From Paraphysomonas bandaiensis (lineage: Eukaryota; Protista; Chrysophyceae): a DNA stretch of 64,000 nt. Location of the stretch: NCBI GenBank assembly GCA_965644295.1, contig CBFFRP010000014.1, positions 9,227-73,226 on the forward strand, in the 5' to 3' direction. Position numbers and translations under genes: made by a program. Below, piece by piece: positions 25,442-45,940 of the stretch; within the stretch, counting starts at the first letter, position 1, and the number at the start of each line of letters is the position of its first letter. A model generated the notes under the pieces. It did not search any database. It worked only from the letters and a program-made list of their open reading frames with translations, and was not told the origin of the DNA.

Positions 25442-26865
25442 TGTTTTGTTCAGTCATTCAACAAATATATTGTTGTCTATATATTATGTTGTTCTTTATC
25501 TAGGTTATATTATTGTGTATGTATTTTTCCTTTTTTATATTTTTGCATACACTGCGATATGTCTTTGTAAGTGTTACCGTAAGACTCAGTCAACATTCCT
25601 TCTATCACAACTCTCCCGGTTGCAATGTACGAGTGCTACATACGCGTTTTATATAATTGCATACCACATGTGTTTACTATTATTTAATACCACTGACTAC
25701 ATACAGATTTAGTAGAATGAAAGGATACCTGGATAACAATAACGGCAGCACTATAATATATTTTTCCAACTGGTTATATGATACGGGACGTCTTATGCAC
25801 GCTTAATTTTCCTCCACAATCTTAATCTCATCCTGAATAGGGTATGTCCCTAAAAGAATGATATCTTGGATAGTGGCCCAATTGACGATATACTCTATTA
25901 TACGGATCTTACCATACTTTTGATTCCTCGTACATAATAATAGAAAACAAGAGATTCTATATTATGACCATAATAACAAGAACTACTTAAGTAAAGAATT
26001 CGAAGAGAATGATATGAATGGATGAGATGAATATTCTTTTACGTTCATAAATCTCAGTCTAGTTAATGACGTATACAATTAAGAATGCTTACAATAATAT
26101 TATCCTTTCTTTCATCTGCTCCTGGCATTGCAACGCGAGTAGAATAATGTTCGTTCATTGAACAGCAAATAAAAGATTCACTGAAATATCGGCGTTCTGC
26201 TGTTGATCAACAGCAGCCTTTTCTAACTCATACTACAAGTGATTTGATCTAGATGTAGGTGTACTACGACATATTATGAAGACTACTACACACACGAGTT
26301 GTATGATGGGTCTAGATTTAGGTTAGTCTTGTCCTATTTTTCCGTACACATAGCAATCCTCATCTATTACGCTTATAGACTTCTCTTGTGTAGATACGGA
26401 ACGATCTCTTAAGCTTTATCTGAACAAATTTAAAGTCATTCTCTATAAGCACTCTTCTGTGTTTCCAGCTCTACCACACTTCGGATAGAAACACACCAGA
26501 TTTTGGTCAACGGAATTCATTTCAATCGCCAGAGATGACTATTTGGACTGTTCTTCTGCATAATCACCTCTGCGACATATGTTGTAACTATTTCATTAAA
26601 CGAAGTATTACATTTTGGGTACAAGAAGTTAGCATATATAATATAATGAATGTCTTTTTTTAGCAGTAGTAAGAAGTGTAAGCAGGGAGCTACTAAATTG
26701 AAATAATATAACAAATTCCCAGATATTTTATGCAAGCTATTTAGCTCTACATAAACTATCTGCAAGCATGAAGGTCCAACCATCCTTAAAAGTCGATATG
26801 ATGCCCAAACCTGGTAAAAAGGTAAAAACAAGTGGATAGTAGATACTAAAAAAGTAACATCCGTA

Positions 26866-27063
26866 TTGTGAGGGAGAGCGGGTGTGAAAAAAACTTTTTT
26901 TTCTCTCTTCTTCAATCTTCTTTGATCGCGATTACAAAACTTGCTCACCTACATTAAACAGTACCATAAACCCACAATTACCATGATAAGCACTGCAAAT
27001 CAAGGTGATTTCTTCTACAATGTGTTGAAGCAACCTTCTCTCACATGTTTGTCATTCGCAGCA
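26866..27063 (+). repeat. Left TIR (198 bp)
   Basis: Exact reverse complement of 30143-30340 by base-by-base reading. Confidence 0.95.
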
Positions 27064-28747
27064 TGTCATCAGACAGCCAAAACTCTGAAATAGAAGAAGG
27101 TCTGTGGGTGCGAGTAAAAATTGTCGCTTTGACTAAATTTCGAGAGGAAGCACAGGCATTCTCTGTAAATCGGTCCGAGTTAACTTCTTCGACAGACCAA
27201 TTAACGATTTGGGTGAGAATTACTGCAATTACTGCTAAAGATGTTTTAATATAACATTTTTTTTAGATTCCAGGAGGTAATCTTTTTGAAGACGATAGTA
27301 ATATCTGGCGTGTCAAAGGTCATGCATTCTTGCATGCACTCGTTGAGGGCGTAGCGAGGCAAGCGTATAATCAAAAGTTATTGCCACCACTATCAGACTT
27401 CAACGACCAACTCAGGATAGACTTCAGCAGAGGTATTACTGTTCGAACTGCAACAAGTTCTGGTATCATTGGTAATTTCCACATGATCCCTCCCGATGGA
27501 GAATTGGACATACCGTTACTTCCCACTAGACGCCAGACAGATCACGATAGGAAGTGTTGTCGGGAAAACGCTTCCCACTATGTGGTGATTGCTGGTGTCC
27601 CGTTCCAAAATTGCCCAGACGATGTGATACTACAGAGACAGCTCAGCTTTGTTGATTCTTCCCTTGCGCTTGTTAAACATAAACAGAATGATCTTCCCCT
27701 CTGTAAATACATGCACTCAAAATATTTCAAAGTTGGCCTGAATCATCGTCCAGGAAATGATATGAACACGTACTGGTCACCGGCAATGAAAGAAGCCATG
27801 ACCGAGTGCAGTGAAGAGGGTCAAAGACTCTTCGAGCTTAATCCTCCAAAAAGTATGCAAAGTGGTATCCGCAAGCAGAGAGGATTTGGTCACGGTGGTC
27901 AATCAGGTCTTAAGCTTTCAACCGCCAGTGAACATGATGCGGCGGACACATCGAGTCATTTGGAAGCACAAAGGAATCGCTTGCATATCGAGCGATGTCG
28001 TGCCAAAGCTTGGAGCAAGAAAGATTTGATTTCTGATAGCAAATTGAAAGATCTACTCGAGCTTCCCGAGGGCAAGAAAGTAAAGAGCTACTCGCAGTTA
28101 AGAACATACTTATGTGAATACTTTAGTACCCTAGAAGGTGAAGAACGTGCAGCTGAAGACCCGTTGGAGTATGACCCGACACTCGATACATGGGTTCTCA
28201 AGTTGGATTGGATGGGTCAAGACTTCCCAAAATATAGTGACCTCAAGGGGGGTAATAAGCCAATACCTGCAGCCCGTGAAAATATCATATTCTCGTCGGT
28301 TCGAATAGGACCACACCCGCCACCACCACCGCCCCCTGCTCTACCAGCTCCTCCAGGTGTTCCAGCACAAGGTTGGCCTATCCCAATTGGTGTTCCCCCT
28401 GCTGGAAGTAGTGGCCCTTCTTTTGGTGTCCCTTTTCCCCTTCCACCAGACTGTGGACCATCGCCCTACGGGGTATACCCCCTCCTATTTATCCAACTGG
28501 GGGTTTTCCTTTTCAGCAGCAGCTTCCTCCGTATTACCCACAGGGATCTGCTCCTCGGCATTATCCGCATCACATGCTGTATGGCTACCCGCCAGAATAT
28601 TACCACGGCCACAGGGATTTTGATTATGCATCGCGTTATCGCCAACAGCGATTTGCCTGGGGAGAAGGAATGCGAAAGGATGAGAGGGGTGAGTGGATAG
28701 CATATGAGGCCGAGTATGAAATTCCTTATCCTGCCGACCCTTACTAA
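27063..28747 (+). CDS. Transposon cargo gene of unknown function, about 543 aa, with a Pro/Tyr/Gln-rich C-terminus
   Basis: Exon 27063-27212 (MSSDSQ...QLTIW), GT-AG intron 27213-27266, then in frame with ORF 27330-28700. Adding one C to the C5 run at 28478-28482 continues the composition as YPPPIYPTGGFPFQQQLPPYYPQ...IPYPADPY* ending at 28747. Confidence 0.8.
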
Positions 28748-29101
28748 ATAGAACAGATTGCAGTCAATCGTTATCTGCCGGGTCTCATTTATTATTTATT
28801 TCGAATCTTGGTAATTTTTGGATGAATTTAACACATACGCTCCGATGCATCGAAATTTAGGTTTAGACTCACTAACCGATTTTCTTTTTTCTTCTTAGTA
28901 TGCAACTGTATGAACTGATATTTTAAATTCTCCACAAACTTTTCAAAATTTTGTTTTTTTGATTTATTAATATTACTTGAATCTATTGCGTATAATTAAT
29001 CATATTCTATCACGAAGTAGTAGCAAGCATATCACATTCAATCATCAGTACATCTATATTAGTAACTAGTGAGTAGAGTATAGAGTATAATCTGCAAATG
29101 A

Positions 29102-30132
29102 TCAATAGTTACAGGCTTCGCACTGTTCTTTCCAAGTAACGGTAATATCCACTCGATTGAATAAATTGCACGCAGTTTCGGCAGTACAGCATGACCACAA
29201 AGCTTCATGTAGTTGAGCTGCAAGTGGTTTATATGCGTACATAATTCCCCACTTCTTTCTAATGTGCGCTTTGGCAAGATGAAATACGGGTTCAATTGGT
29301 GAAAAATCATAAGAATAAGGGGGAGAAACACAACCATCACGCCGAATTCTGCACACATATTATAAATATCTATCTTCACGTGCGTCGAAGCATTATCCAT
29401 GAGCAGCACACTGCGATCCCCAGGAAAAGGGTTCATGTGGGGAAAGATGTCATGTTCTAGGGCATCTAGAAATGTATTATGATCAACATTTTCTTCGTGT
29501 ACAGTAACAGCAAAAACTCCTTCGATAGACATTGCAGCAATGGCACAACAACTAACTTGGGGATTGAAGTGGCCTATAACATCACCACTCACGAAGGCAG
29601 GGTAGCCATGTGGTGAACGCCCATATCGGCGTAGAACTTCTGCCGGCTGGAGATGTGATTCGTCCACAACAGCATAGCAGCGAGCTGGAATTTCATCCAA
29701 TGATCGGGCCAAATTATTCTTATAGTAACGCCTCAAGCCCTCATTTCTGTTGTGGGAAATTCTTTGACAAACTTTTACGGTATAGCCCTCAGTGTTCATG
29801 GCATGCTTCATTTGGTGCTCCAAGTACGCCACGCCGTACACATTAAAAACCTTTTCGCATAATTCTTCGTTGGAATAAGTTGAATTTTCTGCCAGCAACT
29901 CTTTAACAAAATTGATATGCTCGAGTGAAATGACAGTGTGGTGCGAATGGTGTGAAGACTCTGGTTTAACTGATCCAGTGTCCAGATATTTGTCCAACCA
30001 CCTTCTAACTGTGCTTTGGGACACATCGTATTTCTCGTATATATGATCTAGTGATGCGGCCACAGAATTTGTGATTTCCAGAGAGTGATCAAACACATCC
30101 AAAATTAAAAGACGGAAAGCCTCGGAATACAT
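29102..30132 (-). CDS. DD34E transposase (IS630/Tc1-like), about 343 aa, with a one-base frameshift in a homopolymer
   Basis: N-terminal HTH (VSQSTVRRWL), VVDESH and LLMDNASTH are present. Restoring one base in the G5 run at 29319-29323 gives FLPPYSYDFSPIE, with 34 residues between the second D and the E. Confidence 0.92.
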
Positions 30133-30142
30133 GTAAATATGG

Positions 30143-30340
30143 TGCTGCGAATGACAAACATGTGAGAGAAGGTTGCTTCAACACATTGTAGAAGAAATCA
30201 CCTTGATTTGCAGTGCTTATCATGGTAATTGTGGGTTTATGGTACTGTTTAATGTAGGTGAGCAAGTTTTGTAATCGCGATCAAAGAAGATTGAAGAAGA
30301 GAGAAAAAAAAGTTTTTTTCACACCCGCTCTCCCTCACAA
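30143..30340 (-). repeat. Right TIR (198 bp)
   Basis: Exact reverse complement of 26866-27063. Confidence 0.95.
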
Positions 30341-30584
30341 TAACTAATATAAACTTTATTAAATGTCTTTTAAAACATCATGTTCTCTTCACACGGTACC
30401 TCTACTACAAAACAAGTCGAGGTAATACCAAAACCTGGGTTTTGATGTAAAACCTGGTGAAATTTTTGGTGATGGTCGGAAAAGGGTATAACTATGCACA
30501 ATAAGTAACTATGAAGTTAATAACAGTGTGAAGAGTATTATTTATAATATTTTTTACTAATTTCTTCCATATTACTTCAGTTTT

Positions 30585-32112
30585 ACAGCAATAAAAGTCA
30601 CCGACTACACATATATATTACATACAGTTCACAAGTATGAACTATAACCATCTCACTAAACACCACTATACCATCTCAGAATACACCCACATACCATCTC
30701 ACTATACACCCATATACCATCTCACTATACACCCATACCATATTACTATGCATCACTATACCATCCCACTATATTATACCACTATACCATCTACTGTATA
30801 CCACTATACCACCTAACTATACACTACACTATCTCACTATACACCCATATACCATCTCACTATACACTCATATACCATCTCACTATACACCCATACCATA
30901 TTACTATGCATCACTATACCATCCCACTATATTATACCACTATACCATCTACTGTATACCACTATACCACCTAACTATACATCACTACACTATCTCACTA
31001 TACACCCATATACCATTTCACTATACACCTACGTATGGGACAAATCATACGCGATGGGCAGAAACCAAGCCAAAGGAAAAACCGGGCCTGATCACATAAC
31101 AACGGCCTCAGCATGCGCAGACTGTGCACTCCCAATCGACAACATGGCACACATGCTTCTCACCTGCACACACCCCGACCTCACTCACATACGTGAAGAT
31201 GTTCACCAAGCACACCACAACAAGTTCGACAAACTTCGCACACGCACGCTCCCTCATCCCTGGTTCCACACCGCCATAATCAAACTAGCAAAAGCCGCAT
31301 GGAATCCACACACACCCCAGGCTGAGCGCTACTGGACCGGCCACATTACTGCCACACAATTGACCGACGCATTCGGACGCCACATATCCAGCTCACTGCT
31401 CGAACATCAGTTCCACGTTCTCGAAAAATCCGTAACCTCTATCCTCCTTCCCCTATATGGTGGAGGGCTCCGCATGCTTCGAAACAGAGGTCTCAGACAT
31501 CACAACACAGAGACACTGCATCAGTAACACCGATTACGACCCCACCACACTCACAGCAACGCCCGTCGCAGGATACTCACCCGACACCAAAAATACTCCA
31601 ACTACTCCTAGCGACATCCACCCCAAGAATTCTATCCGCTGCAAGAGTCGAACCCGACAGAGACAAGCACCACCACTCCGGAAACAACTCCTCCTTACTT
31701 GTGGTCGAAATCCCACCTCGACAACGAGCACCATCTACACCACCGACTTACACTCTCATATACATCTAGCCCCAACCATCCCCCGTAAAACTCACGATAC
31801 AGGCCCGGCAAACACACTGCCCAAAGGCAGACCCCCCGATTAACCTCACTGCAAGGGACGGTTGAACCATGGTGCTCGCAGCGATGCACAAGCAGTCCCG
31901 AGACGGTAGCCCGCTAATAGTAGTATATAGTAAGTCGAGTTATTAGTTATTCTATAGATGTAAAACTAGTTTCTGTACGCAACCGTTCTCATGTAATAAT
32001 CAGCTATTCTTTTATATTTCACTATACACCCATATACTACCTCACTATACAGCACTATATTATACCACTATACCATCTCACTATACATCACTATACCATC
32101 TCACTATATACC
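30585..32112. repeat. CACTATACCATCT-type minisatellite interrupted by a LINE
   Basis: Many cactatac/accatct variants at 30585-31029, including a higher-order duplication of about 155 bp. The array resumes at 32016-32112. Confidence 0.85.
31030..32015 (+). mobile_element. 5'-truncated non-LTR retrotransposon (LINE 3' end)
   Basis: CADCALPIDNMAHMLLTC fits the C-x2-C-x8-H-x4-C knuckle found after RT in LINEs. The 15-bp duplication atttcactatacacc flanks it at 31015-31029 and 32016-32030. Confidence 0.8.
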
Positions 32113-45797: not shown

Positions 45798-45940
45798 TGT
45801 ATGTATGTATGTATGTATGTATGTATGTATGTATGTATGTATGTATGTATGTATGTATGTATGTATGTATGTATGTATGTATGTATGTATGTATGTATGT
45901 ATGTATGTATGTATGTATGTATGTATGTATGTATGTATGT
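45798..45940. repeat. (ATGT)n microsatellite, about 35 units
   Basis: Perfect tetranucleotide run. Confidence 0.99.

Follow-up and report, generated by a model that had tools for sequence, protein, structure and literature searches.

A two-gene IS630/Tc1-type transposon in Paraphysomonas bandaiensis with a leader exon and intron carried in its terminal inverted repeats

The stretch of DNA analysed here, referred to as the window, comprises 64,000 nucleotides of the chrysophyte Paraphysomonas bandaiensis (GenBank assembly GCA_965644295.1, contig CBFFRP010000014.1, positions 9,227 to 73,226 of the forward strand). Positions 26866-30340 of the window constitute one DNA transposon of 3,475 bp, in which a transposase gene and a larger second gene converge from identical terminal inverted repeats (TIRs). 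The IS630/Tc1/mariner transposons are the textbook minimal transposon, with one gene between two repeats, and underlie tools such as Sleeping Beauty. We propose, at a probability of about 0.8, that the element is an autonomous cut-and-paste transposon of this superfamily which is active now or was so very recently, whose lineage already had two genes when its known members split, which uses its TIRs as expression cassettes and which encodes in its second gene an accessory partner of the transposase. It represents a new two-gene arrangement within a known superfamily, MuDR-like in its working.

A repeat finder returned an inverted repeat of 200 nt with 100% complementarity (arms 26864-27063 and 30143-30342), which on inspection of the sequence consists of 198-bp TIRs, at 26866-27063 on the plus strand and 30143-30340 on the minus strand, together with the outer TA on each side, the latter being the target-site duplication (26864-26865 on the left, 30341-30342 on the right). 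The perfect TIRs, their TA flanks and the terminal sequence TTGTGAGG agree with an earlier description of this DNA made from its letters alone (the sequence-only reading). The positions given there for the two start codons are likewise correct. The ATG of the second gene overlaps the end of the left TIR, its A (27063) being the last TIR base, and the minus-strand transposase ATG, at 30132, lies 10 nt to the inner side of the right TIR. The second gene, on the plus strand, is composed of a first coding exon of 50 codons (27063-27212), a 54-nt coding intron (27213-27266) and a last coding exon (27267-28747) whose conserved core extends to ~28316 and is followed by a Pro/Tyr-rich tail. The transposase coding sequence is intronless (29102-30132, minus strand). 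The two stops (28745-28747 and 29102-29104) converge across a spacer of 354 bp (28748-29101), for which about 350 bp had been estimated, and both 3' untranslated regions (UTRs) lie inside it.

The intact transposase is a protein of 343 aa (copy L004:1709-2740), which matched the NCBIfam model NF033545 of the IS630 family at 104.6 bits, with a cut-off of 100, and Pfam DDE_3 at 68 bits. The columns of D157, D246 and E281 were invariant in an alignment of eight lineages, and the 34 residues between the last two give the DD34E spacing that had been claimed for it. Matches of the N-terminal region (residues 27-139) to HTH_23, HTH_32, HTH_33 and PAX were all under the curated cut-offs, and neither of the two proteins had a Harbinger-type DDE or Myb/SANT match in Pfam. 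By its transposase, target duplication and ends, the element is assigned to the IS630/Tc1/mariner superfamily.

Expression of the two genes was followed on contigs mapped to 26700-30500, which came from two metatranscriptomes, X5 (marine, polyA) and X9, and from the organism A and B runs (X1, X4). The 54-nt coding intron of the second gene was removed in X5, X1 and X4. A further intron of 57 nt, with GT..AG borders, lies wholly inside the TIR (27005-27061 on the plus strand, and its mirror at 30145-30201 on the minus strand). It was removed from the second-gene message in X4 record 10, X5 record 13 and X1 record 3, which join a non-coding leader exon with a minimum extent of 26975-27004 to position 27062 (contig joint 27002>27060, cut +2). 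The same intron was removed from the transposase message in X4 record 11 (joint 30144>30202) and in X5 record 12, where the same junction was placed on the mirror arm. Both messages carry the same TIR-encoded leader, since the same TIR intron is spliced in both. The proposal that the TIR works as a duplicated 5'UTR was thus upheld by RNA contigs in which an exon inside the TIR is spliced to either gene over one and the same intron, and the second gene proved real, with the correction that both the 54-nt coding intron and the 57-nt TIR intron had escaped the sequence-only reading.

The acceptor of the TIR intron is separated by 2 nt from the inner edge of the repeat, and the main ATG follows the splice junction 1 nt on in the second gene and 12 nt on in the transposase gene. 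Two upstream ATGs, at 27020 and 27045, are removed with the intron, and another, at 26983-26985, is situated in the shared leader exon, where after splicing it opens a short open reading frame (ORF) that overlaps both main ATGs out of frame and may dampen translation. At the other end of the genes, 28903-29011 within the spacer is where the contigs of the two messages stop or meet. As for the promoter, the simplest reading would place it in the outermost ~110 bp of each repeat, because nothing else of the element lies upstream, the flanks of different copies are unrelated, and the contig over the outer TIR and flank had a depth of 20 in X1 as against 400 for the mRNA body.

The second gene was found to accompany the transposase well beyond this element. 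A word-indexed search of 5.8 billion proteins returned only the second gene itself, on marine contigs with both genes intact. Transposase relatives at 63%, 53% and 45% identity were present on metagenome contigs, each with a large convergent ORF set beside it, and these neighbours were 39%, 30% and 25% identical to the partner, with E values from 2.5e-76 to 1e-5. Among 1.84 billion representatives, a profile search detected no more than 24 relatives of the partner, every one of which, where its neighbourhood could be read, adjoins the transposase. Four full-length matches were new; three of them lay on contigs long enough to read, and all three (3/3) were convergent with a transposase relative, 2 of them with a DDE_3 match. 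A scan of metagenome contigs for related loci added only two loci; one more convergent pair came out of it. The pair is thereby recorded in nine lineages, down to ~35% transposase identity (this element together with L041, L043, L048, L072, L078, L080, L081 and L082). One of these, L072 on contig C249, is a second family in the same genome, with an intact 345-aa transposase that is 35% identical; its convergent ORF resembles the C-terminal half of the partner, a likeness judged by eye, and has an Arg/Ser/His-rich tail.

Maximum-likelihood trees of eight lineages gave identical topologies for transposase and partner, the partner evolving ~2.3 times faster, and the position of the first coding intron (between ..IW and IP..) was kept in three lineages, namely this element, L041 and L043. 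Synonymous sites between lineages were saturated at 44% protein identity. The TIRs of the relatives L043 and L048 measured at least 156 and 127 bp, respectively. In L048, the lineage with 45% transposase identity, both called ORFs start at the same TIR-internal ATG (L048:115 and L048:4633) and have their first four codons in common (MEHH), so that here even the start codon may be TIR-encoded. The expectation that the two genes travel together was borne out in 12/12 genomic copies, 10 marine metagenome/Logan contigs and eight further diverged lineages, as well as in the shared tree topology. By these comparisons the second gene is most probably a conserved partner and not a passenger.

The genome (62.5 Mb in 669 contigs) was searched for copies and yielded at least 12 full-length ones at 99-100% identity, a near-identity that supports recent activity and agrees with the recent insertion suggested before. 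TA flanks were present in 12/12 of the genomic copies and also in the metagenome contig L031, and since the non-repeat flanks of the copies are mutually unrelated, the copies represent separate insertions. The same element, with both reading frames intact, occurs in the 10 marine metagenome/Logan contigs, some of which are from Tara Oceans. A decayed and internally rearranged relic on contig C375 (L015-L017), with 83-91% identity, many stops and pieces of both genes, shows an older presence of the element family in this genome. One further copy (L014, contig C217) is split by a nested non-autonomous element of 1,033 bp (L014:2951-3983) in the spacer between the two genes; because the latter has an 8-bp duplication, ~34-bp TIRs starting CAGGGATAGGG and many CAATATATTG subterminal repeats, it looks hAT-like.

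The intact second protein of 543 aa (exons 27063-27212 and 27267-28747) was analysed for domains and fold. Neither the partner nor five of its relatives had a meaningful Pfam match, a sequence profile search of PDB with the partner gave 0 matches at E values up to 10, and an Atlas feature search scored 0.80, which is at chance level. An MBD-like motif likewise had no support in Pfam. An AlphaFold2 model of the whole core, built on a 15-row alignment, had a confidence (pLDDT) of 71. Counted along the last exon, residues 1-155 and residues 230-350 each formed a confident domain, and the linker between them was disordered; modelled alone, the C-terminal domain reached a pLDDT of 88 and a predicted template-modelling score (pTM) of 0.76. 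Fold searches with the whole core were unconvincing (Foldseek against PDB, best E 0.37; VIA-align wide, best Z 5.2; Atlas template-modelling score at most 0.31), and those with the C-terminal domain were too weak to name a fold (Foldseek, best E 0.5; VIA, best Z 3.3). Among the weak Foldseek rows for this domain were several winged-helix regulators, which we record as a lead only. A low-complexity tail ends the partner in every lineage, differing in kind: in this element it is rich in Pro and Tyr, in the other lineages in RS/RD, His or Gln. A complex prediction of the transposase with the partner core scored 0.00, a value that carries no weight either way. By analogy with the Myb-like protein of Harbinger and MURB of MuDR, we infer that the partner may be an element-encoded nuclear accessory factor that acts with the transposase, for example in import, in end or target binding or in regulation. 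An accessory role in transposition is ranked as most likely, a role at the host interface or in targeting comes second, and that of a passive passenger is nearly excluded.

It could be envisaged that the window copy is a dead element, a fossil with both genes truly frameshifted. Two genes had been described there; both are present, but as assembled each is broken in the window copy by a shortfall of 1 nt in a homopolymer, there being five C in the second gene (28478-28482) and five G in the transposase gene (29319-29323) where other copies have six. Each shortfall was found in 8/12 assembled copies, which would agree with genuine decay; however, the shortfalls are scattered with respect to three lineages defined by single-nucleotide polymorphisms (SNPs), and even as assembled the transposase is intact in four copies and the second gene fully so in three. 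Moreover, the extra C was present in 10/10 short-read (Illumina) metagenome/Logan contigs, the extra G in 8/8 of those covering the G-run, and both in all four RNA or presumed-RNA runs, a pattern that fits long-read homopolymer errors. Because of this scatter and of the bases carried by short-read contigs, the frameshifts of the window copy are most likely errors of assembly, and a true fossil is quite improbable. Homopolymers that this assembly gives as five bases often have one base fewer than in short-read contigs, and a frameshift at such a homopolymer anywhere else in the genome calls for caution. A different doubt concerns the second gene alone, which might be a host gene captured once and carried along with no role for the element. 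The protein indeed has no recognisable transposon-related domain, and SNPs within the family show no purifying selection. In contrast, the gene is present and open in all nine lineages, follows the transposase in its tree and keeps its intron position; its 24 relatives have a transposase in every readable neighbourhood; and in the genome of P. bandaiensis partner matches lie only inside copies of this element and in the C375 relic, with no host paralogue outside elements. The passenger explanation is thus already largely refuted, and we regard it as very improbable indeed.

A role of the second gene in dealings with the host, as a silencing suppressor, as a self-limiting regulator or in steering insertions to harmless DNA such as (TACA)n arrays, deserves more weight. 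Perfect (TACA)n/(TGTA)n microsatellites surround six of the 12 insertions (those with the flanks of L001, L003, L004, L005, L007 and L011); the loci concerned are unrelated, and both orientations occur. An example of such an array in the window is at 45798-45937. A 24-mer of the (TACA)n repeat occurs 143,498 times, corresponding to ~0.9% of the genome, and the excess of insertions in these arrays is ~50-fold per base, or ~15-fold per TA on the assumption that TA makes up ~7% of genome dinucleotides. Besides this enrichment, a host-directed function would be consistent with the shifting composition of the tail between lineages, with a core that evolves faster than the transposase, and with convergent messages that abut or overlap and could feed small-RNA pathways. 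There is, however, no domain or fold evidence for such an activity, and the enrichment in (TACA)n could instead reflect survival bias, through the persistence of harmless insertions, or a target preference of the transposase itself. A host-directed role is, on balance, unlikely. Rather less likely still, we consider, is a true two-component system in which the partner is needed for mobility and directs insertion to (TACA)n as a safe haven, with a symmetric TIR cassette of promoter, leader exon with upstream ORF and intron to keep the two genes co-expressed.

The reading we prefer, that of an active transposon with two genes and an accessory partner, can be set out as follows. Each 198-bp TIR would form a complete expression front end, made up of a promoter in the outer ~110 bp, a leader exon with its upstream ATG and a 57-nt spliceosomal intron. 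As the left and right TIRs do not differ, transcription of either gene would run inward and yield the same leader, and the two messages would end in the 354-bp spacer or slightly overlap within it. The DD34E transposase would cut and paste at TA. The second protein, in which a disordered linker joins two folded domains, neither of them with a recognised fold, and which ends in a low-complexity tail that differs from lineage to lineage, would act in the nucleus as an accessory to the transposase.

Several observations weigh against this reading or restrict it. Logan contigs stop 30 nt ahead of the splice junction, where a graph of 31-mers would be expected to branch, so that the extent of the leader towards its 5' end is a minimum. 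Low-depth contigs run from the TIR into the (TACA)n flanks, so that some read-through or carry-over of DNA exists. The mobility of the element is deduced from its copies. The eight SNPs within the family comprise six non-synonymous and two synonymous changes, selection being visible only between lineages. Finally, neither homology nor fold searches lend support to a function of the partner.

Compared with known systems, the element shares with canonical IS630/Tc1 (DD34E) transposons a DDE_3 transposase, with a helix-turn-helix that is putative here, the DD34E spacing, the TA duplication and the TIRs. TIRs of ~200 bp also occur in known Tc1-like elements. In contrast to the single gene of canonical members, it has an obligatory, co-inherited second gene, and a TIR leader exon and intron used by both genes; the single-gene organisation, which is typical of the superfamily and not strictly defining, gives way to a second conserved gene in 9/9 lineages. 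Maize MuDR has two convergently transcribed genes and ~215-bp TIRs that hold promoters and start sites, the function of mudrB being unknown (PMC3440606). The present element resembles it in the convergent two-gene layout launched from TIRs, whereas MuDR belongs to the Mutator superfamily, with a MULE (MURA-type) transposase in place of the DDE_3/IS630 type with TA duplication found here, and mudrB is unrelated to the second gene. The target duplication of MuDR is 9 bp. The MuDR-like design put forward in the sequence-only reading consequently stands as a layout and an analogy, and falls as membership, the transposase and the duplication being different.

Among ciliates, the TBE elements of Oxytricha and the Tec elements of Euplotes combine Tc1/mariner-superfamily transposases with extra conserved ORFs under purifying selection, TBE having three ORFs (PMC4724952). 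Their accessory products are a 22-kDa protein, a 57-kDa zinc-finger/kinase and, in Tec, a tyrosine recombinase, in contrast to the present partner, which is set apart by Pfam only, having no kinase, zinc-finger or integrase match there. They differ also in TIRs with telomere repeats and in their ciliate germline setting, and have no convergent two-gene layout from TIRs. In Harbinger, nuclear import and end binding depend on the Myb-like partner. The PIF/Harbinger superfamily (PMC4482050) is alike in pairing a transposase with a second element-encoded protein, and unlike in its transposase family and target duplication; moreover, the partner described here is without a Myb/SANT domain. A literature search, with Repbase and Dfam outside its scope, revealed no two-gene IS630/Tc1 family outside ciliates and no TIR-embedded intron common to two genes.

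Two features of the surrounding DNA may be recorded. Directly to the right of the element, at 30609-31052 of the window, is a C/A-rich tandem array made of two 158-nt units, 96% alike, in which 23-nt units are nested. About 1 kb to the right of the element, at ~31357-31839, a stretch of 484 bp is 83% identical, in inverted orientation, to the right flank of copy L006, and is an unrelated dispersed repeat shared by the two flanks.

The retention through deep divergence of a second gene of unrecognised fold indicates that the IS630/Tc1/mariner superfamily can evolve two-component systems outside ciliates too. The leader exon and intron of the TIR, used symmetrically by both genes, provide a compact solution to co-expression that is documented directly by RNA, and the apparent preference for (TACA)n may be relevant to the way in which transposons spare compact genomes. 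The element is near-invariant in marine metagenome contigs, including those from Tara Oceans, and is present in polyA metatranscriptomes, and for these reasons it could serve as a naturally occurring, active transposon on which to base genetic tools for marine protists.

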